From NCBI GenBank assembly GCA_964188305.1, contig OZ076885.1: 64,000 bases of DNA, one strand, 5' to 3'. A program made the translations under genes and the position numbers. Shown here piece after piece: positions 8,939 to 27,422 of this stretch. Source of the stretch: Podarcis bocagei. Lineage: Eukaryota. Position 1 is the first letter of the stretch. Every line of letters begins with the position of its first letter. A model generated the notes under the pieces. The model made no database searches and had not been told where the DNA came from. It was given only the letters and a program-made list of their open reading frames with translations.

Positions 8939-10669
8939 TAAAATTTTGAAATACACTAGATTACATCATTTAAATAATCACAAACTAGAAGAGGTAATTG
9001 AGCCTTGTTAACAGAAGCGTATTTCAGAACGATTTCTGATGTTAAGACATTCCTTGGATTTCTACAATGGGTTTTTAACCATTTACAAACAAATCCAGTG
9101 ATCCGTAAAGGGAGAGAGTATTGCTTATCCACAGGATTATACAGGTAATCTGGAATGTTTGTGAGTGAACTCTGAATATATTTCGGCTTCCTTTTCCATT
9201 TACGTGTTACATGCATTCAGTGCAAAGTAAAACTCGGTAAACTGGTTCCTACGTGGGCACGAGGGTAGAAGTAGAAAACTGATAAGCTAACAAAAGATGG
9301 ATGAATTAAATGTTTCCTGGGAGAGCAAGCTGAAATGAGGCTAATTATACTGTCTAAACATTCTCCTTTATTGTGTTAATACTGCTCTAAATTTGACTGG
9401 ATGTTGCCTAATGCTGTTATAATATATGCACAATGAAACCAGTCTATCATATATGGTCAAAATTCCTTTTTCCCAGCACAATCATGCAGTGTCAGACATC
9501 TCACACGCCTATCTGATCCCCACATTATTAACAAGATTAGCTCAATATTTTCTCTCTAGAGACCTGCTCCTCATGATCCGGTGCCAATAACCCCTAATTA
9601 CCATAGAGGAAGACATCCCAAGTAGGCCACAAATCTGAAGGGCCCGCCCTGCCCCCCTTGAGCAAGTCTTCACAGGGTAAAGCCTATTTGCCCTCAGACA
9701 GACAACACACATTTTGTTGTCTTCACTGTTATACCTATTTACAAAATGTGCAAAAGATTCCCATTACCCAGAATCTAGATCTCACTCCTCTTACCACTTA
9801 CGAGCCTCCTCTGATTTCTCCTTAGGCCAAGTTGTGCTGAAGTGATTATTTTGGCTAGCCAGATTAACTCCTTATGTTCCTACAGCTCATGCTTAACTTT
9901 CACTCCACACTTAACAGGCAGTCTTCAAACTAACAACACTCTTCCTTATCGCTACCAGCTCAGTCAGTTACACTAAGCAGAGGGTTGGCCACCAATCTCC
10001 TCTCAAGATGACAGCCTCTTTTTGACAGTTTGTGTTCCATGGGGCCCTCACTTTATCACCTCATCAGGCAATGCCTCTCAAAATGGGGAATGTGGCCTCC
10101 AGAAGGGTTTGTGGGGCACCTACAAGAGAGGGGGCAGCATTTTGTAAGTCTTATTGATAAGTAGGTCTATAAAGCTTTCCACAATCTGAGTGTCTACCTC
10201 ATGGATTTGCTGACGGAAGGGTGGAATGGTCAGTCACAGACTGCTGTGAGTTACCTGAAGCTAGAGACCATGGACTGTGGGAGCAGCTGAGAAGAGGAGT
10301 AGCGGAGGTAGGGGAGCAACTGTGTGTGTAGGAACCACTCAGTTGGGAGCAAAGCAGACCTAAAGGTTATAGGAGCCAGGTAGCTACACCCAATGAGGTT
10401 TCTAAGTTGGGTTGTATGGAAGATCTAACAAGCTTAAAAACGGGGCACATTTTTTCCTTCAATTTGAGAAACACTTATTTAAGTGGTACTCGTCACAAAT
10501 GAATTCTCAGTAGAAAACGACATCGTTACGGATAGCTCCAATGCTAATTGGCCAGGTGAAGTTCATCCTTGGTGCAATTTTTGTTGAAAAGGAGATCTTC
10601 AACCCAAAGCAGGTTGTGAGGAAATTTCTGAGCTTACTTAGCCAAGTCATTTTGCAGTCAGCGATCCTT

Positions 10670-11465
10670 TCATGACCTATTGTGCGATGCGCTTATCATG
10701 ATGTTGGGCAAGGCGTTGCGCCGCTTCTTCCAGGAGCCCAGCTCCCGAGAGTACCTCCGTATCTGCCTGAACCAGTGGTGAGTCCGTGCCTTGTCTCCAT
10801 CTCGGAACACAAAAGACTCCCGCCTGATCTCAAGGAGTTCAAACGTGTCGTCGCAGTCGGGATCCACAGAGACCACACAGTTGCTGAGTCTCAAGGGCTC
10901 CCTGAGCAAGCTGAACTTCCCATTGTTTTTGTCCCTAATCAGTACCAATACTGCATCTTTCACAGGCCCTGGCTCTCCGGGTTCAAAGCTAGACTCAGAG
11001 GCGCGTCTGATGTTGACCATGAGGAGCACTTGCATGTTCTGGAATTTTAAGGTCTTGCTGCCCTTTTTGACCCACTGCCCATCAGGAGGCTGGGCCAGCT
11101 GCAAGGGGCCTTCCATCACAAAGCGGGTTTCTTCCCGCAGCCAGCCCACAGTCTTGATAGCGGTTTCCCTCATTTCAATGTTAATGACCTCCCTGTTCTT
11201 CTTGCTGTCCTGGCGGAAGGAACGCAAAGTCCACGAGTTTCCTTCCTGCTTGGTCTTCATGTTTATGTGCTCCAGGTGGGACTCAATGCGGCTTTTGGCC
11301 TCCCTCAGGCTGCTGTGATCTGGGTGGTACTCAGTGGTGGCTTTGATGATGCGGCTCAGCAGAAGTGGGTACTTGGTGACTCTCTGTAGTGGAGCCATGA
11401 GGAAGGACCGCAGATTCATGCGGCGAAGAGCTGTGTTGTCGTTCTGGGAAACATTGAGGAAAATC
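10670..11465 (-). CDS. RhoGEF gene last exon: DH C-terminus, PH-like domain and tail
   Basis: Acceptor cctccctgcag|G; encodes IFLNVSQNDNTALRRMNLRSFLMAPLQRVTKYPLLL...WKKRRNALPNIMISASHNRS*. Confidence 0.94.
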
Positions 11466-14400
11466 CTGCAGGGAGGTCAAAAAATAATGTATTTTGTAAA
11501 CAGGTACAGGAAAACAGAAAAGCTTACACCGAGGCTCTTGTTCTTACATACACATGAGGCATTGTTATCTTTAATTAATTAACATTTACAAAGTAATTAT
11601 GACTTAAGATCCCAGAATATTATTGATATATACTGCTTTCCTGCAAAACCATTTACTTGATTTGCTAGACTCAGGAACATTTTTTATTTTTTTTCCGTTC
11701 TCAGGCTTTGTTTAATGCATCACTAAGGTAAGGTTCAATAGACTTGCTGTTGATATCTTAGCTGTTAAATATTACTAAATTTATGCAAGTGTAGACACAG
11801 GGCAGTATCTAGCATATTAGTTGCAATAGTGCAGGGAATGTTTTCACCCTCTCCTTGTCCTATGTGTCCTCTGTACCCTAAATCTGTTCTGAGGGTTCCC
11901 CCAGCCATCTAGAACGGATTTGGGGAGGAGGCTGGAGGTGCAGGGAGCACTCAGACACTGTACTGGGAATGTCACAGGTGGATGGGCACGGCCTTTCTAT
12001 TGTTCTGATAAAGCCCCAGTTGGTGATGTGCCTTTGTTGGTAAACTCCTCAGCTCTAGTTGATGCCATGTATCCTGGTGTAAGTGCCTGGTCATTGATGA
12101 ACCCCCCCCCCTCCCCAAAGCATACTTGCTCCAAGGGGTGTTGCTAAGTACTTAAAAGTATGGGCTCATAGACAAACTTTTTGCATATCTGAATTAATAT
12201 GTACAGATGCAAATTCAGAATTTTAATATTACAGACAATAAGCCCATTGGACACCCCAAATATGTTCAATTAACTTGCACCCCACTCCAGATCTGTCCCC
12301 TCTTCAATTAAATAACTCTCATTTTCCCAAAAGATCCTTCTCCAAATCCATTTAATCCCCTTACAATTGCCCCCATTCATTATTATCTCTAGGTGCAATC
12401 ATTTCAAATTCATTTATTTCCACAAATTTGTATCTTACTAACCCAGATGACATGCCCCTCCAACACACACCCAGTTAATCTCTTGAATACATTACCTACC
12501 CATAAATGCTCAGTACATTTAGGAAAAGATATGGAGTCTGTGCCCCAAGGCATATACTCCCTACCAGGCCTGTGCAAGGGGGCGTGGACAGCTGGGTACA
12601 CTTGCCCTGGGCCTTGGAGGGCTAGGATGACTGGGGGGCTCCACCAGGGGCCTGCAGGACTTATGGTGTCATGTCAAGAACAAGACTTCCATGCTGGGCT
12701 TCATACAAGCTCTGAATGGTCCTGCTACCAACCCAAGATTAAGAGGTCTCCTCACCTGAGTAACTCCTTCTCTTTTTCCAGTGCATTGAGCATGTTCACT
12801 GAAGATGACTGCTGGAGGCAGTATGTCTGGAAGGCAGGCAGCATATTGACAAATTCCAGGAATATCTCACCGATGCACACAGTCATGAGGTCATCATCGC
12901 CCTGCCGACACACAACACACAAGGCAATGCATCAGCCAGAGACGTGGAGGTACCAGAGGCCATTAAAAGCCACCTGCCTAATATTCAATTGTGGCAAATG
13001 TGCTGGAGTGGAGCTGGTGACATTGGTGTCTCTGCAGTTTATGGAGCTGAGGTGTGTCAGGGCAGCAACAAAGGCAGGGCTGTGTGGACATACCAGCAGG
13101 AGGAACAGATTGGTGTCCACACAGCCCTGACCGCATCACCGCCCTGCCCCGTCCCAGCCCTGCCCAGGTAATATGCAACCCAGACCTACCACCTTGACTG
13201 CAACTGCTAATATAATTACAAGGTGATCTTGGACTACACGTTAGCAAAACACCTCATGATAGCTGTTTCAACAGTGAGTTTCTATTGGCCACGTTTCCCA
13301 TAAACTACAGCTTGAATGCATTCTGAATAATTAAGCTCTTTCCGCACTGAAAACAAGCAAAAGTGCTACACGTTTTTCCTTGAACCTAAACCAGGAACTG
13401 CTAACTTCTGCACTCTATTCTCCAAACAGTGGCCCAAGCCCAGTCACTAGGAATCACAAGGGAGGAAAATGCTGTTATACTCAGCTTCTGTTTGTGAGCT
13501 TCCTATGGGCATCTCATTGGCCACTGTGAGGACAAGATGGTAGGTGAGATGGGCCTTTGGTTTGATCTAGCAGGGATCTTTTAATGGTTTTCTACTGACT
13601 CTGGTAGAACATTAAAAGTGTATGCAAATACAATGCAAAAGTGATTAATCTCAGCTTGACAACCATGTTGTTATTCCCTTCCATGTCTTTTAATGATTTA
13701 CTCTACTGATGTATATTTTTAGAATCTGTTACATTTTGATTCCTAATTAAAAAAAGATAAAAGTATTTCACAAAAGACTATTGCAAGACCATTCCCCCTT
13801 TTTTGCCAGCATGAGGTGCTGTAGCACAGAGGCTCAGTTATGACACAGAGTACTACACTATTGCTGAAACAAAAACAAACATTCATAATTAAGGAAACAT
13901 GCCATCCAACTTAAATGGTTTGCTGAAATCCATTAGCAGACACCATCCTTGTAAGTTAAACTGGATTTCAGTTGAATTTCATGGATTAAATCTGCACTTT
14001 TGAGGTTTTGAAACTGGAGACTGTACCACCCTATTCCCCCCAAAATTTCAACCCCATATATGTCAAAATAGAACGCTCAACATCTGAACCCTTTAAACTT
14101 ACTGCATTAAAATTTGCATGCATGCACACAGATTTCTACGAAGTAGTGCAATGCAAATTTTGCATATATGATTTTGAGTTCTAAATTAATTTTAAAAATT
14201 GTGACTGGCAGAGCTGGAAATGACTCATAGGATCTCTTTTACGCCTTTGGTCTTATTCCCGAGCTCTTCTATTATCCTTGATTTCCCTCCTTGGCTCCCC
14301 AGCATCTTAAAAAGTTCAACTACATCTCTGACGCAGTGGATAGCATTATCACATTTCCCCATTTTGGATGATTATATCTTGGCCTAAAAAGACACAAACC

Positions 14401-17400
14401 TTTTGCCCGCTTGCACCACCAGCATGCAGTCCCTGGAAGGTCAGCTACGAGGAAATACAACCCTTGAACTGAAAAAGGTTCCTTGACCCTCGTCCAGGCT
14501 GGCTGGGAGTGACCCCCAAGGGTTTCACACAAGACTCTTTTCCAACCCTACCTGGGAGATGCCAGAGATCAAACCTTGAACCTTTGTATATAAAACATGA
14601 CCTCCGACACCAGGAAGAATCCCTTTCCTGCCTACTTGTCCATATACCCAGTACTGTCTTCTCCGATGGCCCTCTAAGGCAGAGGGTTTTCACTGCACCT
14701 GCTATCTGATCCTTCCCCTTCCCTCCCTTTTAAAAATGGCTAAGTCAGAGACTGAACCTGGAACTTTCTGCATGAAAAGCATGTGTTCTCCTGCTGAGCT
14801 CTGGCCCTTCCCCAAGGCGATTATCCGGCCTTCAAAATAATACTCTCTCCCGCATTTGACTTGCAAAGTTCAACAACAGGGCGCAGAGCCGTGTGCCGTA
14901 CACAGGGTGCTAGTCTGTAATAATGAACCATCAAGAACTGCTGTTCCAGCAAATTATAAGTAACCTTGAGTACGTTCAAGAAAGAGCCAGTTTGGAGCGT
15001 GGCTCAAATAACACTTAAAGGATTTAACTAGCCTTGCGCCTGTTCTTGGCCACCGGCAATTGTTGGCAGCCAAAGCCGCTTTTAATTGCTCTCCTGTGGG
15101 CAAGATGGGCTTCTTTGAATGCTGCTGTAAAAATTAATTTCATGGTAAAAGGGTGTTTTGTTTCTTTCAGAGCCCTTAATAAAGCACAGGCCATAATATA
15201 AATACACAGCGGCGTGTAAATGCCATTCGCTTTGCTGAGGTGCTAGCGCAACCGTCTGCCTGCCAGCATTGTTTTCCTTCAGCCAATGGAAATGCGGTAA
15301 TATTTGGAACTGATGGTAGGCCTCGCTGCGCAGCAAACTGAAAGTGCTAAAGGGGCAATTCCACATGTCATAAAGCTAGCCCCATACTGGTCTGTTCAGG
15401 AGCACATGGGGCAAAGGGACTCACGGGGTAAGGCAGCCTTCCCCAGCCTGGTGCCTGCCAGATGTTTTGGACTACAACTCCCATCACCCCTTACCATTGG
15501 ACATGCTGGCTGGGGCTGATGGGAGCTGTAGTCCAACAACACCTAGAGGGCACCAGGCTGGGGGAGGTTAGCAAAGGGATGCATGCATCGCAGGGGGCTT
15601 TCTTAGGTGATTCTATGATTCTACAAGGCACAAAGGATTTTTGAGATGCTTATCCACCAAGTGGTCTTGAATTCACGTAACTTGTCAATCACAAAGAAAC
15701 ACAGGCGACTTATGGTAGACTGGGGGCATCCAATCAGAGCTGAGGCCTTCTTCCCTAATCTAGAGGCAGATGTTTTCTCACACAATTGAAATGACAAAAA
15801 AATAATTAAAAAGTTGGTACCCTTTGGAACAAGAGCACAGGGAAGCTGCCTTATACCAAGCCAGACCAACTAGCTCAGTACTGTCTTCTTTGACTGGTAG
15901 CATCTCTCCCAGCCCTACCTACACGCAATGCATAGGCTCTTACACTCAGCAATGGCCCCTTCCCTCTTTCAGCAGCTAAAATGAGTCAGACAGAGGCATA
16001 CCCATTCTCAATTCCCTTACCTGCTCATTAGGCATTGTGCCTTTCTAATGAGTGGCACAACCTTTGAGTGCCATAGTAACAAAGCTACAGTGGCAAAAGT
16101 AGCTCATTATAACTGCACAGGGAAAGGGAGAAGAAATCTGAGACCACACACGCACACACTACCTGCTCAAAGGCCTGCTCAATCTCTTCTTGAAGGTACT
16201 CCAGGAAGTTTTCGTTGAGGTCAATGAGCTCCTGTATGTTGCCGAAAACCACCAGCAGCTGGTCCTGTGTTAGCAGGCCAGCAGCTTGCATGGGGAGGTA
16301 GAACTCTTCCTTGATGATGCGCAGGTCCTCCCCGTAGCTGGTTTCAGTGTTGACAAACTCCAGCACCGACTCCTTCCGCTCCGTCCGGCACTTCAGGCAC
16401 TTCTCGCAGAGGATGGCCCGCCTCTTGTTCTGGTTCTGGACATCCGTCTCCAGCGGGAAGTGTCTGCCCCCACAGTCGGTGCAAGGCTGGTGGGCCTCCC
16501 AGGCCTGCAGAGATGCCAGCGTCTCCGACGCCTTGCTCCTCCACTTCCTACTCAGCACCTGGCTGATGCCGCTGTCTGCCCGCTCCATCTCAGCTGACCT
16601 CATCCTTGGCACCCCTCCACTGCTGGCATCGGCACTGTCCCTCTCGTCACTCCCGCCAACAATGCCGCTGTCGGCGCTGAGACTGCTGACGTTGCTCCAG
16701 CGGTGTTTGGAACGAAAGGAGCCGCCCAGAATGCCGTGGTTCTCATCAACGTTGCTGCTGTAGTTGAGGTTGGCTTTCGTCAGCACTGGGCCTGAGCAGG
16801 GGGGGGAAATAAAATAAATCTATTTGTGGAACCTTCCCATTGTTTTGTTCCTCAGCCCTGTTCATCCAACAGTAAAAAGCTTGTCCTGTTTTGTTGTGTT
16901 TTTCTCCTTGTGACCAGGAAGGATTCTGCAAAGTACCTGAATACAGAGACAGGGAGAACCTAGTTCTTACTGATATGTTGCTACATTCTGGCATTTTCAT
17001 ACATACATAAAGATTTTCTTTTTCTTCATGCTAAGAAAAGCTTGACCTGATCGCTAAGCATGCTCTTAAAGGTACAGTAGCAGGTCATCTTTAAAAAAAA
17101 AAAAAAGACAGAAACCCTCCTTGTATTGTACTGGTTAAATTGTCCATCTAGCCTAATGTTATCTCCAAAGCCTTGGTCAAGGTTTCCTCAGCCTTGCCTG
17201 CTGAGATCCTTTAAATAGACCTAGACAACTCTTGACCCACCAATATATCCCGCTGGCTACATTGCTTGCTGGGTGCTTCTATATATTTGCAACCCCCCCA
17301 AAAGTAGAGGTTTATCAAATTCCTGGTGGGCCACAATGCACAACTGTGTTTAGTCTCATGGGCCATAAGCTAGCAGGTCTACTTGACAATATGCAAAGAA

Positions 17401-20400
17401 CATATTCTGCTTCTGAGTTACACTTCTCTCTTTAATTCAACAGCTAGGGAAGGATGCTCTCATTTAGAATTTGGCTCAGGTGTGTTGGAAGGAACAAGCC
17501 TGTCCTAATGAACTACGCAAAGAACAAGCGGAAGCCACCTATTGACGGCTCCATCTGCTCAGTATACTTGCAGAACAATTGTTCCAGGTTCTACTCACCT
17601 TTTGCTATATCATGCATGAAGTCAAAGAAAGCACTAGATTGAAGCTTAGCTCATGACACTGCCTTACCTTTGCATACCCCCTTTCCTGCATTTGCCAAGA
17701 GCCAGTTTGGTCCTGTATGGGCCCAATCCAGGCTATTGGCTGTTGCTATGAATTGTACAGACAGAAAGCACACTGGAGGAGGAGCTGCTACTGTATTCCC
17801 CCTCCTCTGGAGGGACCCTGGAATAAGAGGCTACAGCCGGCTGCAAACATAATCCACGGCTGTTGAGTGGGAGATGTTTGGAGGCTATCTCTCTGAATGA
17901 TGGCTGCTAACCTAATGTCAAAACACATCCAGAACTATGAGTGACATGGACAGACCCTGCAAATCACACACAAAGCAAAAGGCAAGGGGGGCATACTGGA
18001 GTCTCTCTCTTGCCGGCGCTTCTGGGCATGCTGCCGTGCTGCTGCAGCAATCTTCAGCTCCAGTTGTTTTCTCTTCACAGCATCTGTTGGCATCGGATCA
18101 CTGAAATGAGGCCGCAGCCGACACTCCCGTTGAGCTTTGGTGCAGTCCGAAGTTTCGTAGGAGATGTCAGAACTTGATCGGCGGCAGTTGGGGCTGGAGC
18201 TCTGGAAGAAAAGCAAGGGGTGGTTGTGGGGAGAAGTTTCTACTAAACAATATATAAGATACTTAAATAAGGTAAAGGTAAAGGTACCCCTGACCATTAG
18301 GTCCAGTCAGGACCGACTCTAGGGTTGTGGCGCTCATCTCGCTTTATTGGCCGAGGGAGCCAGCATACAGCTTCCGGGTCATGTGGCCAGCATGACTAAG
18401 TCACTTCTGGCGAACCAGAGCAGTGCATGGAAACACCGTTTACCTTCCCACCAGAGTGGTACCTATTTATCTACTTGCACTTTGACGTACTTTCGAACTG
18501 CTAGGTTGGCAGGAGCAGGGACCGAGCAACGGGAGCTCACCCCGTCGTGGGGATTCGAACCGCCAACCTTCTGATCGGCAAGTCCTAGACTCTGTGGTTT
18601 AACCCACAGCGCCACCCACATCCCTTGAAGATACTTAAATATACATGGCCAAATCCGACACCCAGCGCCCACTACCTCTAAAACCGTTGTTTCTCCTCAT
18701 ACCTTTCTGGGGGGGGGGCAACATCCTCACTCAAGAAAGGAAGCAAAATATGAGCTGTTAGTGTTACATTGAACACATGTTCATGAAATCTGTGTGCAGC
18801 TGTTTAAATATGCACATAGTTTAATATTGGGGTGTCAGCAAGCAACATGTCTATTTTATCGGGCTGTATGGGAGAGTTGGCAGGATGGGCAACCATATGT
18901 GGACAGTGTATCGCAGCAGCAGCTTTACTCCAATTAAGATGGCAACAGCTCTCTTTCCCCACCAACCACTGTTTGCAATCCAAACCCAATGATTTGGATT
19001 TGTAAGTGCTAGACTGAGGATGAAACGGGCATTCCTCCCCATGCCTTTCCTCACACGCTTTCTGAAGGCTGGAACTTTATGTCTATACTACATAGTTAAA
19101 CAACTTTCCAACTGGTTTCATTGTTTTGGGTCATGACCAAGCGATCAAGAAACACTTTTCCGTGAAGAATCTACACAGATTACTCTGAGCACCCTCACGC
19201 AGCTGTGGTTCACCCAAAGCTCCAGTTGGGTGAAGCTAGGATAATAAAACAACTCTCAACCCAATTTTAAAATATTGTGGGCCCGATCCAGCTAACATTA
19301 TGTGAACAGGTCCTATTGAAAGCAATGGAGAAAGTTAATCTCCAGTTCCATTGCTTTCAACGGTATTTTGGGCCACTCCCGATATCATTCTTATTGTGCA
19401 CATGTGATGATTCATATTCATGCTGGTATCGGGGCGGTTATCCACAATCCCGCTTTCAGTCGTTTGCACCTGTCATCGTTCTGAGGTAAACATACTTTTC
19501 AATTGGTGCATGTCCTGTAGCTTCCTGTTGAAACCCTGTAACTTTTCATATCTCAAATGTCTCAGGTTTTTTGTTTTGTCCTGCATTTGTTTTGCTACAG
19601 AGCAAGATTATCCCTCCAGACAGGAATCATGCAGTAACACTGGGGAAACATTTGCAGAACAACTGATAAAGCAGAATAATCATAGCTGTCAACTTTTCCC
19701 TTTTCTTGCGAGGAATCCTATTCGGAATAAGGGAATTTCCCTTAAAAAAAAGGGAAACGTTGACAGCTATGAGAATAACGTGTGGACAGTCCAGCGTCAA
19801 TCCAACACAATTGCACTAATACTGCATGAATGACACACTATGGAATACACCTCCAAAATGCACCAGTCTGGAGGGGCCCTTAGTCACATGTAACTTTAGC
19901 TAGATTTGTACGGTAGTGTTGATGTGCCTTAGGTATCTTCATTCATTAGCTTGTTCCTCGCAGCCACCCAGAAGCAGGAAGGGTGAGATGGGGTGCGGGA
20001 AAACAGGAGAGAGAGGGGGGGGGAGAGAGAGGTAGAAGAAGGGAGGGAGGAAAAAGCATGGAGAGAAGAGCCAGAAGAGTATTGGTGACAGGGGTGCAGA
20101 ATAGCTGAGAGCTGTCATAGAAAGTAAAGTTACAGCTCCCTGACCCAACACTTCTGAAACCCCTTTCTGTTCCAGGCCACACAACTCACGGTGGGTTGAT
20201 GCGAGTCCTCCACAAAAGTGAGGTCATCCTTCTTAAGTTCACAGAATCCTTTGGAGGGAGTCTCAGGAGTAGCATCGCCACTGCAGCTGTGAAAAAAGGG
20301 ACACCACCCCAATTAATGTCCTGCACAAACAGCAGTCCAGAGCCAACTCCATGCGTTGAGAGGAAAATGCATCTTGAAAGCTACAGTGTATTATTCTACA

Positions 20401-23400: not shown

Positions 23401-26400
23401 TTAATCTGAAATGATAAAATTGTCATGGGTGAAAAGGGTATCAATAGCCAGTAGTTATGAACGCTATATTACCTCCAGTATGCCTTTCACTACCAGTTGC
23501 TGGACAGCATAAGTGCTATTGCACTCATGTCCTGCTTGTGGGCTTCTTGTAGGCATCTGGGTGGCCACTGTGGTAACAGGATGGTGGACCAAATGGACCT
23601 TTGGTCTGATCCAGCAGTGCTCTTCTTATGATTTTATGTGCTGAAAGGATGCTGCTCCATGTAAACAATTGACTGTATGCAGCAGCTCACCTTATGGACT
23701 GGCCTCACACCAGATCTCCCCATGTTATTCATATTACTGACAGGTTTTCTTACAACAAGCACTCGGTCAAATCATGCGGCATGGGGGAAATCCACATGGC
23801 AAGGCAAGGCACATGTATACCTGGCCCCATGGAACAACTGCCACAAGGACCCTATTTCAAGCAGCCTCAACACCACATGTTGCTGAAGTGAACCTAAGGC
23901 TTGCAACCCTGTCATTTCACTGCCAAATCCTGAGAATATGTTGCCTCTCAAATCTAGTGACACCCCTGCCGCTGAGCCAGAAACTCCCATCGTCAAAACC
24001 AGATCCTCCATGAGATTGCTAAAGCTCTGGAAGAAAATGACAGCTGGGTTTTGAGCAAATAATGGCTCCCAGTTTTACAATTTCAAAGGGAAACTGTTTG
24101 GTCTCATAAGCTTTTGACTCAAAGTCATGAGAAGCTTGGCAACTGGTTGAAATGACCGTTGTGTTTTTCATAGAAATGAATTAATTTCAGAAAGCTCTGA
24201 ATGTAAGCAAACTGAGCTTGATAAAGTCCATCTATGGCAAAAGGGATGTTGTGAACAAAAGAAAATAACACTGTGCGATGGATCTCAGTCCCATACTTAG
24301 AGAACCCATGGCTTATAAGAGCAGAGGCTGGCTCACCTGAGCAGGAGGAGGTGTTTTACTGCACTTGGGACAATGGAATCTCTATGTAGGTCAGACAAGA
24401 GAGCATCAATTTTTTTAGACCAAAGGGCTGCATTTTCTCAGCCTCCAAGCTCCTGTGTGGTTTTTAATGTTTGAATACCCCTTTCATTTACTTTTGCTGC
24501 TCTGATGGGTTTCACCAGGCTGTATATTATGTATTTTCTGTTGCGTTTATAGTTTTCTTGTTCTCATTCTTGTTTGTTACTTTTATTTTCAAATTTTGTA
24601 TTGCCCCATGTTTGCACATTGATAAATAAGATTTTCTGGTTTATTGTGAACTGCTTCTTTCCCCTCCTAGCTCCAGAAAGAGAAACTAGGAAGCCTTGGC
24701 TTCCTAGTATATCTGAATCAGGGTTCATGGTTTGTTGATCCGTAACAAACAAACAAACAAACAAACAAACAAACCATAATTACAAGCAAACTTTAAGCCA
24801 TAGTTGTTGGCCTATGACATGTGGACTTGTTAGGGAGCAACAAATCATGATTCCTAGCTTGGATGTAATGGGAAGCCAAGACTTCCTGGTTTGTTCATCG
24901 TGCCTGGGGGGAATGAGGAGGGAGTGATTGAGCATGCTGCTCATTTACAATAAACCACAATCTGCCAGAAAATCTGACTTATCATGATATGTGGATGTAT
25001 ATGTGATAGAGCATAGCATAAATCTTTATATATAAACCAATAAGGGTGCCATTCAGTCACCCCGTATGACCCTAAAATAGTGAATCCTAAGCTTATGGTT
25101 CCAACAAGGGAATTCAGTCTCTGCCTTGAACTCATCATGGAAACTATCCCTCATAAGATTTGTGTTGTTACGTTGCCCCAAATACACACTGCAGGAAATC
25201 TACCAATATATTAGGTCTCCATAACCATTGATAGCTTACAAAGGGCAGCATTTTTTTAATTATTTGCCCAAGTCACCTGAAAGTCAGTTTTCACAGGCTT
25301 TAATATTATGTTTTGTGTCACCTCCATTCACATGACTGACATTTCCTCCAACCTGCTGCCCAAAGTCAATAATTAACCCACCCTGTGAAGATCTAGATGT
25401 GTGTCAATGAACAAGGAGGACCAGTCATTTCAGTGGCTCAAGAAACAGAGCAAACACCCCCCCCCACGAGGCAGAGGGAGTCCCCACCCTCTCCACAATC
25501 CCCAAGACTACCTTTCTAGATTGTTAGGCAAACTCCTTCCTGACATCAGATATAGCAGTTAGTTAAAAACCCCAGCTTCATCAGTTCTCCCAAAGTGGCA
25601 TATGGGAAAATGTCTGCACAAATTAACACAGCCCCAACACTGTCTCTTTCCCTACAGCTGCCTGATACCTCAAAGAAAGGAACTCCCCACAGGTCAAAAG
25701 GGGGAAAGCTATTAATGGCGTAAGTGTCTGTGCAAATTATTACACCTCTGCAGCATACTGATTCAGCAAGGAAATTCTATAAATTACTTAATACAGCTAA
25801 ATTTGAAAGTGCATTTCTAAGTACCCTAAAACTGAAATTGCTCTCAAGAACTCTAACAGAGTCGGTTACCTCTTCTTAATGAGGTCCAGTGCAGAGCCTA
25901 TAAATTCATCCTTCATTTTCTGCAGCTTAGCTCCATAGCTGGATATATCTGTCGCTTCTAATAGCAATGGGCAGCAAGAAGACTGGTTTTCAGGCACCAC
26001 TGGCTGTCCAGCATGGTGGAGGACTTCGCTTAGTTGTCTTGCATTCAATCCCTGAGTCTCCCCTTCAGCAAAAGTTTTCCCTCCCTCCTCCCTAAGGGCT
26101 GCAGCAGACTGTAGAGGTGGTCTTGGAATTGGACTCGAACAAATGGGGACCGGGATTCTATCTGAAGTTGGCACCTCATAGCGCTTGTCCCTAGCCATAG
26201 GCATGTTCATCAGGCAGAAGCTCCTGTCCCATGTAGATGAATTATCTTGATAGCCAACAAGGCCAGAAGTGCTCTGGGTATTTTCATGAAACACATCATC
26301 ATAATAATCTATCGTTGCAACCGTTTCTTTGGCAAGAACTTGCTGGGCACCTGAACAAGGGTTCTGGTTTCTTTTTTCTTCCAACTTTTGGGTTCCTTCC

Positions 26401-27422
26401 TTCACATCTTTTGTCACTTCACCGCTGCCACCGAGAAAACATGTCTCCTTGATTCTCATCCGCTTGAACTCTTCAAAAGTTGGAATGTAGAGTCTCTCTT
26501 TGAAGTCCCCTTTTTTGCTCAGCTCCAAAATCCTTTTGGTGTCTCCTTCCCCCTCATATCCCTTTAAGGATCCAGTCGTTTGGGACTTGACCATGTCCTG
26601 GCCATCACTGGCACAATGGAGAGTCAAGTTGGGCGAGCTGTTCTGTCTCCTGATCTGCAATCTTCTCCGAGCTTCTTGCTTGATGTCTTCTGGGTTTGTT
26701 AGTCGGCGAGAAAAGCAAGGCCGATGACTCCCCAGAGCTGTCCATGGCCCGTGAGTGAGGGTGGCATGCTGCACAAATATGGTGCAACAGTTCACCGAAC
26801 AACCGTTCTTATATTGCTGGCATGCCCGGCATTCAGAGCATTCCCTTGGAACCAGATCATTCAAGGAAACCTGAGGTCTGAGAGGCTTGCAAATCTCTGC
26901 AGCTTTACTACTGTGAATTCGAAGTTTTTCCTTTAGGGTTTTTTTGGCATCCCCATCCACGGAGGAGAAAAGCCACGGAGGCACTTTGGCACAAGGAGGA
27001 AGGGCGACGTCTCGCGCTGCAGGTGGAATTCTGTCCAACGCGAGAGGGAAGTGTCGGCAACATTCAGGTGAGCTGGGGGATGGAGTACCTTCTGCAGAAC
27101 ACTTTGACCAATGAGCTGTGCCTTTGTAACGGACGACAAATTCTTTGTCTACATTTCCATAGCGGGGATGGCAATGCGGATCAGCACCCGTGGCCCAATG
27201 TAGATTCTCCACACTTCGATACAGATGTGCCCCTGCAGTGCTGTCTGCTTTGCTCACAGGATTAAAGTCCCCAGTAAAAATGCGAGCGTCCAAGTTCTTC
27301 AGAGGATGCATGCTGCTAACTGAGAAATCCTTTAAGCCATGTTGTGCGTACAGCTGATTATTCTGGCAGCTCAAAATTACCCGACAGTGTTCCTGCCTCT
27401 CATCAACGCTGATGTATGTCAT
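10670..27422 (-). CDS. Uncharacterised Dbl-family Rho guanine nucleotide exchange factor (DH + PH-like), about 1141 aa; complement(join(25870-27422,20190-20286,17997-18201,16163-16791,12756-12901,10670-11465))
   Basis: Six GT-AG exons with matching phases (2,0,1,0,2) total 3426 nt with no internal stop. DH hallmarks: ERKESVLEFVNTETSYGEDL (CR1), FGNIQELIDLN, YCLQQ, LRSFLMAPLQRVTKYPLLL (CR3), LEHIN. A PH-like region follows (FVMEGPL...SFVFRDGDKARTHHWFRQI). The start ATG at 27422 is inferred as the first in-frame ATG after an upstream TGA. Confidence 0.88.
12756..12901 (-). CDS. RhoGEF gene exon, middle of the DH domain
   Basis: Acceptor tcggcag|GGC, donor AG|gtgagg; encodes GDDDLMTVCIGEIFLEFVNMLPAFQTYCLQQSSSVNMLNALEKEKELLR. 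Not shown in the ORF track. Confidence 0.92.
13441..13590 (+). mobile_element. CR1 LINE 3'-end fragment
   Basis: Homologous to 23470-23637 (gggcatct..ttggccactgtgag...gatggg.ctttggt.tgatc.agcagg). Confidence 0.6.
15434..15570. mobile_element. Palindromic hAT-derived MITE (ggactacaactcccatc...gatgggagctgtagtcc family)
   Basis: Inverted arms; same family as 57988-58123. Confidence 0.75.
16163..16791 (-). CDS. RhoGEF gene exon with Cys cluster and N-terminal half of the DH domain
   Basis: Acceptor cccctgctcag|GC, donor CAG|gtagtg; encodes PCTDC...LCEKC...ERKESVLEFVNTETSYGEDLRIIKEEFYLPM...EIEQAFEQ. Confidence 0.93.
17997..18201 (-). CDS. RhoGEF gene internal exon (SSSPNCRRSSSD...KRKQLELKIAAAARQHAQKRRQERDS)
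   Basis: Acceptor cttttcttccag|AGC, donor A|gtatgc; phases 0/1. Confidence 0.85.
18270..18624 (-). mobile_element. Sauria SINE, full length
   Basis: On - strand: tRNA-like head GGGATGTGGGTGGCGCTGTGGGTTAAACC...GGTTCGAATCCC, then body, then (ACCTTT)n tail. Perfect 14-bp TSD AAGATACTTAAATA at 18256-18269 and 18628-18641. Confidence 0.93.
19681..19771. mobile_element. 91-bp hAT-type MITE
   Basis: TIRs CATAGCTGTCAAC...GTTGACAGCTATG; 8-bp TSD AGAATAAT/AGAATAAC. Confidence 0.8.
20190..20286 (-). CDS. RhoGEF gene internal exon (CSGDATPETPSKGFCELKKDDLTFVEDSHQPT)
   Basis: Acceptor ttttttcacag|C, donor ACC|gtgagt; phases 2/0 bridge the neighbouring exons exactly. Confidence 0.78.
23470..23637 (+). 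mobile_element. CR1 LINE 3'-end fragment
   Basis: ...ggcatctgggtggccactgtgg.aacaggatg.tggacc.aatggacctttggtctgatccagcagtgctcttcttatg. Confidence 0.65.
24744..24774. repeat. (AAAC)n microsatellite
   Basis: Seven perfect AAAC units plus a partial unit. Confidence 0.95.
25870..27422 (-). CDS. RhoGEF gene, large first coding exon (517 codons, mostly low-complexity N-terminus)
   Basis: Inside the 554-codon ORF. Ends ...GSALDLIKK(S) at donor AG|gtaacc (phase 2), matching the phase-2 acceptor at 20286. Likely acceptor tttcttctttgcatcatcag| at 27614. Confidence 0.78.

Follow-up and report, generated by a model that had tools for sequence, protein, structure and literature searches.

A conserved pseudosubstrate-like motif in the exposed C-terminal tail of GEF64C-family Rho exchange factors

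A RhoGEF gene of Podarcis bocagei, located in the 64,000-nucleotide stretch of DNA analysed here (the window), ends in a conserved, exposed linear motif of the pseudosubstrate type. Translation of the minus strand of window positions 10694-10732 yields WKKRRNALPNIMI, 13 residues that extend from P-6 to P+6 when the Ala of the core RRNAL is taken as the P-site. The data establish the motif and its type, not its partner. Our best explanation, which comes from sequence comparison and which we hold tentatively, as plausible though short of probable, is that the tail may act as a pseudosubstrate towards a basophilic AGC kinase in the form of its free catalytic subunit, with that of PKA (PKA-C) the likeliest.

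The coding exons were delineated by tblastn with orthologues and by inspection of splice sites. They are listed from the N-terminal to the C-terminal end of the protein.

about 25870..27422, minus strand: large N-terminal exon of the long isoform, ~517 aa (tblastn to caecilian P0062 residues 1-533, 45.7% identity, E 1.8e-119)
20190..20286, minus strand: probable 5' coding exon of the short isoform, boundaries tentative (weak tblastn match to the P0045/P0046 N-termini; splice signals)
17997..18201, minus strand: coding exon that encodes CRRSSSD (18169-18183) plus a basic, helix-like stretch that is conserved (94% by tblastn to Pogona P0045 residues 51-120)
16163..16791, minus strand: coding exon with a disordered N-terminal region, a CxxC...CxxC knuckle (16388-16483) and the start of the DH domain (about 16378) (tblastn, translation, Cys conservation)
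12756..12901, minus strand: coding exon of the middle of the DH domain, GDDDLMTVCIGEIFLEF...EKEKELL (tblastn, 98-100% to lizard orthologues; AG/GT boundaries)
10670..11465, minus strand: last coding exon, with the end of the DH domain, the PH domain and the tail; acceptor ...CTGCAG/G (splice sites, translation, RNA splice joint)

A Pfam scan found no domain in the ~517-residue N-terminal exon of the long isoform. The open reading frame that encloses the motif, 10670-11419 on the minus strand, bears the end of the DH domain (Pfam RhoGEF PF00621, E 1.9e-13). It reads ...HHWFRQIRRYSRELGSWKKRRNALPNIMISASHNRS before the TGA stop at 10670-10672, which leaves seven residues between WKKRRNALPNIMI and the stop. 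In single-cell RNA data from a related species, reads extend over the last exon and ~1-1.6 kb of 3'UTR, and three of them contain the predicted splice joint 12755/11464. This shows that the gene is expressed and that its protein really ends in the tail.

Sequence comparison identifies the host gene as the squamate orthologue of Drosophila RhoGEF64C/GEF64C (ARHGEF49), a DH-PH Rho exchange factor, because it combines a Pfam DH domain and a DH/PH fold match with the phyletic pattern reported by Fort & Blangy 2017. The Pogona vitticeps orthologue P0045 is 98.9% identical over the last exon by tblastn and has an identical tail, and its DH domain matches PF00621 with an E of 1.1e-37. The solved sequences closest to the gene in a PDB sequence search are intersectin DH domains, which match over the DH part only; ARHGEF3/NET1 ranked far down in that search and was rejected as an identity for the gene. 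Word-index searches returned orthologues from birds, turtles, lizards, amphibians, teleosts, a skate, two marsupials, amphioxus, a gastropod and a mite, and no placental mammal orthologue was found among their matches. The exhaustive search for orthologues gave 73 representatives at E<1e-30. The automated names of the orthologues are inconsistent, for example 'myosin-M heavy chain', 'intersectin-2-like' and 'ARHGEF17-like'; one salmon entry is named 'Rho guanine nucleotide exchange factor 49', and the entry from the skate refers to zebrafish si:dkey-91i10.2. In the published survey, GEF64C orthologues occur in fishes, coelacanth, sauropsids, amphibians and marsupials, the placentals having lost the gene, and the overall pattern is one of non-placental vertebrates plus most protostomes (Fort & Blangy 2017, PMC5499878).

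Fly GEF64C is a RhoA GEF that furthers the attraction of axons towards the midline (Bashaw et al. 2001, PMC2199320). Neither of the two GEF64C papers (PMC2199320, PMC5499878) takes up the tail motif, and arhgef49 or si:dkey-91i10.2 received a single incidental mention in the searched literature. The host family is thus already known though little studied, whereas the tail motif and a possible PKA link appear to be undescribed in the searched literature. The suggestion of the original prediction that this might be an undescribed system consequently fails for the gene, a member of the known GEF64C family (PMC5499878), and appears to stand for the tail motif within the searched literature.

The architecture of the C-terminal region was modelled with AlphaFold2 (AF2) on the DH-PH-tail unit of the Pogona orthologue, using an alignment of 65 orthologues (alignment A2). 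The model has a mean pLDDT of 83, and its residue numbering is used below. The DH helices are found at residues 1-196, and two further elements precede the tail.

10802..11128, minus strand: PH-like β sandwich, model residues 234-342 (AF2 strands)
10739..10792, minus strand: PH C-terminal α helix, model residues 346-363, pLDDT about 90 (AF2 secondary structure)

The PH domain has no Pfam match, despite the β sandwich and C-terminal helix of the AF2 model; a failure of this kind was noted by Bashaw 2001 (PMC2199320) as well. Foldseek aligns the model over about 380-396 columns to the DH/PH tandems of PDZ-RhoGEF, p115, LARG and NET1, with E values of about 1e-14, and the nearest folds are those of RhoA-specific GEFs. 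The motif corresponds to residues 366-378 and begins two residues past a conserved L-G that closes the PH helix. The polypeptide chain beyond this helix is modelled as coil, with pLDDT <50 from residue 370. The full-length AF2 model of the snail orthologue P0037, which is 40% identical to the Pogona protein, is arranged in the same order, with a helix at 382-398 and a tail at 403-417 with pLDDT <50. The models show the last 20 residues as a predicted exposed, flexible tail that adjoins the PH C-terminal helix and in which the motif is not buried. The location given in the original prediction, 10694-10732 and C-terminal to the last PH helix, is reproduced exactly by the translation and by the order of helix and motif in the model, and the burial in the PH fold that it had considered as a counterargument is contradicted by the low-confidence coil of both AF2 models.

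The tail itself, covered by a peptide of about ELGSWKKRRNALPNIMISAS, divides into the following parts.

10694..10732, minus strand: conserved C-terminal motif WKKRRNALPNIMI (translation and conservation)
10709..10723, minus strand: pseudosubstrate-like core RRNAL (both Args invariant in the alignment; fits the published consensus)
10718-10723, minus strand: Arg-Arg of the core
10715-10717, minus strand: Asn of the core
10712-10714, minus strand: P-site Ala
10709-10711, minus strand: P+1 Leu
10670..10693, minus strand: variable end SASHNRS and TGA stop, 10670-10672 (translation and column entropy)

Conservation was evaluated in alignment A2, with sequences from lizard, fish, amphioxus, fly, mite, molluscs, brachiopod, bryozoan and acoel, and in a second table of 128 unique tails. 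The latter was anchored on RR....N, which fixes P-3, P-2 and P+3 by construction, and the unbiased figures for these three positions are those of A2. Only 13 columns of A2 are invariant, among them R369 (P-3), R370 (P-2) and N375 (P+3), each found in 65/65 sequences; G364, W366, I376 and M377 are at least 90% conserved. Over the 47 non-vertebrate rows of A2, WKKRRNALPNIM ranks second in conservation among the 12-mers of the DH-PH-tail unit, exceeded only by the DH catalytic helix PLQRVTKYPLLL. The column entropy is 0-1.4 bits within the motif, compared with 2-3.7 bits in the flanks at 353-365 and 379-385 and 2.7-3.7 bits in the last residues.

The 128 tails delineate the remaining positions. 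The P-site is occupied by Ala in 104 tails, Gly in 23 and Glu in one, and never by Ser or Thr. Ser is the commonest replacement for Ala, and its absence, with that of Thr, is as a pseudosubstrate predicts. The P+1 residue is hydrophobic in 122 tails (Leu 106, Met 11, Val 3, Phe 2), the six exceptions (Arg, Thr, Gln or Asn) belonging to divergent members, and P-1 is Asn in 107 and Gly in eight. Upstream, P-6 is Trp in 122/128 and both P-5 and P-4 are mainly Arg or Lys; P-13 is Tyr or His and P-14 is often Tyr or Phe, the residues at P-13 and P-14 lying on the PH C-terminal helix of the AF2 model. Downstream, P+2 is Pro in 72 tails and Ala in 48, Ala being the residue of most invertebrates, P+4 is Ile in 122/128 and P+5 is Met in 119/128. 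The family consensus is W-[RK]-[KR]-R-R-N-[AG]-[LM]-[AP]-N-I-M-[IL], and in most orthologues 5-9 residues separate N-I-M from the stop. The motif is carried by fly, mite, amphipod, bivalves, gastropods, brachiopod, bryozoan, acoel, amphioxus and all non-placental vertebrate classes. Fly RhoGEF64C belongs to the same family and likewise has its DH-PH unit at the extreme C-terminus, the Musca protein ending in ...GAWRKRRNALANIMINGMLTRS; it differs from the lizard protein in being much longer and in having Ala at P+2 where the lizard has Pro. As read from these alignments, the 13-residue linear motif has been under very strong purifying selection across Bilateria.

Eccles et al. 2016 (PMC5059767) quote the pseudosubstrate consensus as R-R-X-S/(A/G)-hydrophobic and show binding of the ARHGAP36 sequence RRGAV in the PKA-C cleft. 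The GEF64C tail core matches this consensus at every defining position, and the Asn and Gly found at its P-1 are the residues of PKI (RRNAI) and ARHGAP36 (RRGAV). Full-length PKIα (PDB accession number 3wyg_D) reads ...GRTGRRNAIHDILVSSASGN. Comparison of PKIα residues 18-28, RRNAIHDILVS, with RRNALPNIMIS of the tail gives six identities and four conservative changes over 11 positions. The similarity in the six residues past the core has P≈0.003 against random 6-mers, in a comparison that was made post hoc. The two sequences share RRNA followed by an aliphatic P+1, Asp or Asn at P+3 and three hydrophobic residues at P+4 to P+6, as well as a helix ahead of the extended pseudosubstrate and a disordered context (PKIα is also represented by the 1ATP peptide 5-24). 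PKIβ and PKIγ would read RRNALPDI and RRNAVPDI, and their Pro at P+2 would then match the lizard tail, a comparison given no weight here. The aromatic residues are arranged differently: the lizard tail has Trp at P-6, Tyr at P-13 and no aromatic at P-11, whereas in PKI P-6 is Arg and P-11 is Phe, and both the replacement of the P-6 Arg by Trp and the lack of Phe at P-11 count against the PKA reading. Furthermore, PKI is a free 76-residue protein with an NES, whereas the tail motif is the C-terminus of a DH-PH enzyme. Neither a 30-residue nor a 50-residue tail matched the PKI family (Pfam PF02827) at E≤10, the only hit being a spurious one to PGM_PMM_I. A phmmer search of the tail against all PDB chains, including those of PKIα, returned nothing at E≤10, and an ESM Atlas feature search with a 40-residue tail gave no usable match. 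The resemblance to PKI is at the level of the motif only, with no sequence-family relationship detectable by these searches.

Three further PKA-binding proteins offer parallels. The hallmarks of the PKI motif of SMOOTHENED (SMO) are Ala at the P-site, Arg at P-2 and P-3, a hydrophobic P+1, an upstream aromatic residue and a preceding helix (Happ et al., bioRxiv 10.1101/2021.07.05.451193). The GEF64C tail exhibits the first three throughout the family, and it has the preceding helix and, in vertebrates, Tyr at P-13 as a candidate upstream aromatic. SMO itself carries its upstream aromatic at P-13, within a pseudosubstrate embedded in the tail of a signalling protein. It differs in that this is a GPCR tail, with an affinity of about 0.8 µM that relies on avidity and GRK phosphorylation. 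ARHGAP36 also belongs to a family of Rho regulators and carries R-R-x-A-hydrophobic, and some GEF64C orthologues read RRGAL as in that type. Its motif, however, is N-terminal, lies in Arg-rich sequence and is linked to the degradation of PKA-C, and its binding to PKA-C is experimental whereas that of GEF64C is putative. The conserved RRNAL of the EBV protein BNLF2b binds and inhibits PKA-C (bioRxiv 10.64898/2026.08.23.746553), so that by experiment a Leu may stand at P+1 behind RRNA. BNLF2b is otherwise different: it is a viral microprotein, it has a proline-rich auxiliary motif alongside, and it is unrelated to RhoGEFs.

These comparisons lend partial support to the original interpretation of the tail as a putative PKA pseudosubstrate. 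Its description of the motif holds in each particular: RRNAL fits the R-R-x-A-hydrophobic core of the published consensus (PMC5059767), extra basic residues and a helix lie upstream, and the aromatic residue is not at the P-11 position of PKI. The check that it proposed on conservation also came out in its favour, the motif being kept in both vertebrate and invertebrate orthologues while its flanks drift.

PKA-mediated inactivation of vertebrate RhoA via Ser188 is established. If the tail is a pseudosubstrate of PKA-C, both of its invariant Args would pair with the kinase's acidic active-site cleft, the Ala or Gly at the P-site would be unable to accept phosphate and the Leu or Met would fill the P+1 pocket, while the hydrophobic I-M-I, which parallels I25-L26-V27 of PKIα, may add contacts. 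The GEF could then block PKA locally at the site of Rho activation and so protect RhoA from inactivation by PKA. Alternatively, PKA-C could capture the GEF only once cAMP has released the catalytic subunit. Either option would couple Rho activation to the cAMP state. AKAP-Lbc (AKAP13), a RhoGEF that anchors PKA, provides a precedent for the physical coupling of a Rho GEF to PKA. AKAP-Lbc binds the RII dimer via an amphipathic helix and hence holds the inactive holoenzyme; a pseudosubstrate would bind the free catalytic subunit only. No link between RhoGEF64C and PKA (RhoGEF64C with Pka-C1) was found in the searched literature. Trp at P-6 and Asn-Ile-Met from P+3 are as constrained as the Args, yet they are not recognised PKA determinants, and a minimal PKA model leaves both unexplained. 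The constraint on N-I-M outside the known PKA determinants implies that the partner may read a different or larger epitope.

Many Dbl-family GEFs are autoinhibited by flanking segments, and the tail could likewise act in cis, either as a latch, autoinhibitory or stabilising, that folds back onto the DH or PH domain or as a membrane anchor in which Trp, the polybasic run and the hydrophobic residues cooperate with the PH domain. The position of the tail directly behind the PH C-terminal helix, after the conserved L-G hinge, suits such a role, as does the conservation of the Trp, the basic run and the I-M-I hydrophobic patch. In the fly, the gain-of-function phenotype is reported to be lost through a GEF64C missense allele 'at the COOH terminus', and DH-PH fusions were poorly expressed (Bashaw et al. 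2001, PMC2199320). However, the tail is not docked on the DH-PH body in either AF2 model, in both of which its pLDDT is <50, and the exchange of Pro and Ala at P+2 argues against a continuous amphipathic helix. Simple membrane binding, moreover, would have no need for an invariant Asn, a position restricted to Ala or Gly, or a fixed spacing. We regard a cis-acting element as a serious alternative, although on balance an unlikely one.

The extension of the PH C-terminal helix binds Gαq in p63RhoGEF and Trio, which is a precedent for a tail that docks a partner in trans. The GEF64C tail could accordingly dock onto a partner, such as a receptor tail, a G-protein subunit, importin-α or a scaffold, that reads the whole W-x-x-R-R-N-A-L-x-N-I-M epitope. 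Such a partner would account for the conservation beyond the core, where Trp at P-6 is present in 122/128 tails, Asn at P+3 is invariant and I-M is conserved at about 93% or more. KKRR fits a monopartite NLS, and in vertebrates PNIMIS fits the regular expression of the calcineurin PxIxIT motif. Yet the overall pattern is explained by no known motif class, and the restriction of the P-site to Ala and Gly, with no Ser or Thr in 128 tails, is a prediction of the pseudosubstrate type. Calcineurin PxIxIT was down-weighted, as its Pro is Ala in 48/128 tails (Pro in 72), the 'x' Asn is invariant and the Met is conserved at about 93%. The NLS was treated likewise: KKRR or RKRR is present, but an NLS does not need the equally strict Trp, Ala/Gly, Asn, Ile and Met. 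The ALxxPI helix of Gαq type known from p63RhoGEF was set aside for the different spacing of ALPNIM. A trans partner of this kind is improbable in our estimation, and slightly more so than the cis-acting element.

The tail might also serve a basophilic kinase other than PKA, such as PKG, PKC, ROCK or PKN, as pseudosubstrate or docking site, which would make the protein a scaffold of GEF and effector. The pattern R-R/K-x-(A/G)-hydrophobic is common to the pseudosubstrates of several AGC kinases, the additional basic residues at P-4 and P-5 are conserved and the host protein is a Rho GEF, all of which are consistent with this idea. The closest literal matches are nonetheless PKA inhibitors, namely PKIα (RRNAI), BNLF2b (RRNAL) and ARHGAP36 (RRGAV), and the tail is without the basic residues C-terminal of the P-site that PKC pseudosubstrates have. 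This assignment is doubtful, more so than docking to a non-kinase partner.

A chance resemblance without function is effectively refuted. RR.[AG][LIVMF] occurs 15 times in the six-frame translation of the 64-kb window, in real proteins it turns up about once in every 4,500 residues, and the five-residue core by itself is not above chance, as the original prediction had cautioned. The motif rises above chance because it is conserved, with R369, R370 and N375 supplying three of only 13 invariant columns across Bilateria, and the caution does not extend to a core retained across that range in a disordered tail with drifting flanks.

Axon guidance, epithelial morphogenesis and cell shape depend centrally on the cross-talk of cAMP/PKA with Rho, and the known physical links between PKA and Rho are few: AKAP-Lbc, ARHGAP36 and the phosphorylation of RhoA by PKA. 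If the PKA reading is true, GEF64C would join PKI, RI, ARHGAP36, SMO and BNLF2b among the carriers of PKA decoy substrates, and a pseudosubstrate within a RhoGEF would constitute a direct, stoichiometric link kept for >500 million years. It would also supply a role for the non-catalytic element that is most conserved in this little-studied GEF family. A bolder and decidedly speculative proposal, to which we give little credence at present, is that GEF64C RhoGEFs may be ancient bifunctional cAMP-sensing Rho activators, in which the DH-PH unit would activate Rho and the PKI-like tail would capture and inhibit free PKA-C, kept across Bilateria and lost in placentals. Bifunctionality of this kind, if true, could explain the Rho-dependent axon attraction driven by fly GEF64C. 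The gene exists in Drosophila and zebrafish, where these ideas are easily testable. Even with a partner other than PKA, the tail is a sharply defined and apparently undescribed linear motif.

The coding part of GEF64C, the squamate orthologue of the Drosophila DH-PH RhoGEF of that name, extends well beyond the last coding exon, and several features of the gene are described here.

Features of GEF64C in the window.
25870–27422, (-) strand: large N-terminal exon of the long isoform, ~517 amino acids, matched to the caecilian orthologue P0062
18169–18183, (-) strand: CRRSSSD, matching the RRxS consensus for phosphorylation by basophilic (PKA-type) kinases, within a conserved N-terminal exon
16388–16483, (-) strand: CxxC-x21-CxxC motif (CTDCGG...LCEKCLKC), adjoining the DH domain on its N-terminal side

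The ~517-residue exon shares 45.7% identity with residues 1–533 of P0062, and a Pfam search of it returned no domain. At least one exon between it and the downstream exons is probably absent from the gene model, because the reading-frame junction between them is unplaced. At the other end of the gene, single-cell RNA reads from a related species pile up at 9000–9700, ~1–1.6 kb below the stop codon, a position that fits the 3' end of this gene's 3'UTR. The last exon (within 10400–11500) was also found in several small runs from different squamate species (65–114 million letters each), with 0.54–0.82 of the sampled words present. Since these runs look like exon-capture or phylogenomic data, the last exon may be a marker locus.

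In the CxxC-x21-CxxC motif, conservation of each of the four cysteines is 90% or higher across a range that runs from molluscs to lizard. The segment resembles a small zinc knuckle or ribbon; the Pfam search gave no match to it, and the AF2 confidence over the segment is only 60–83.

Bashaw et al. 2001 (PMC2199320) describe one of three sequenced EMS alleles of fly GEF64C as a missense "at the COOH terminus", which abolished the gain-of-function phenotype. As located by that wording, the mutation could fall inside the tail motif, the predicted PKA pseudosubstrate-like stretch of 13 residues with an RRNAL core. The CRRSSSD site reads RRRSSSD in the goby orthologue. By these consensus matches, GEF64C may be a PKA-type substrate besides a pseudosubstrate carrier, both roles being predicted.
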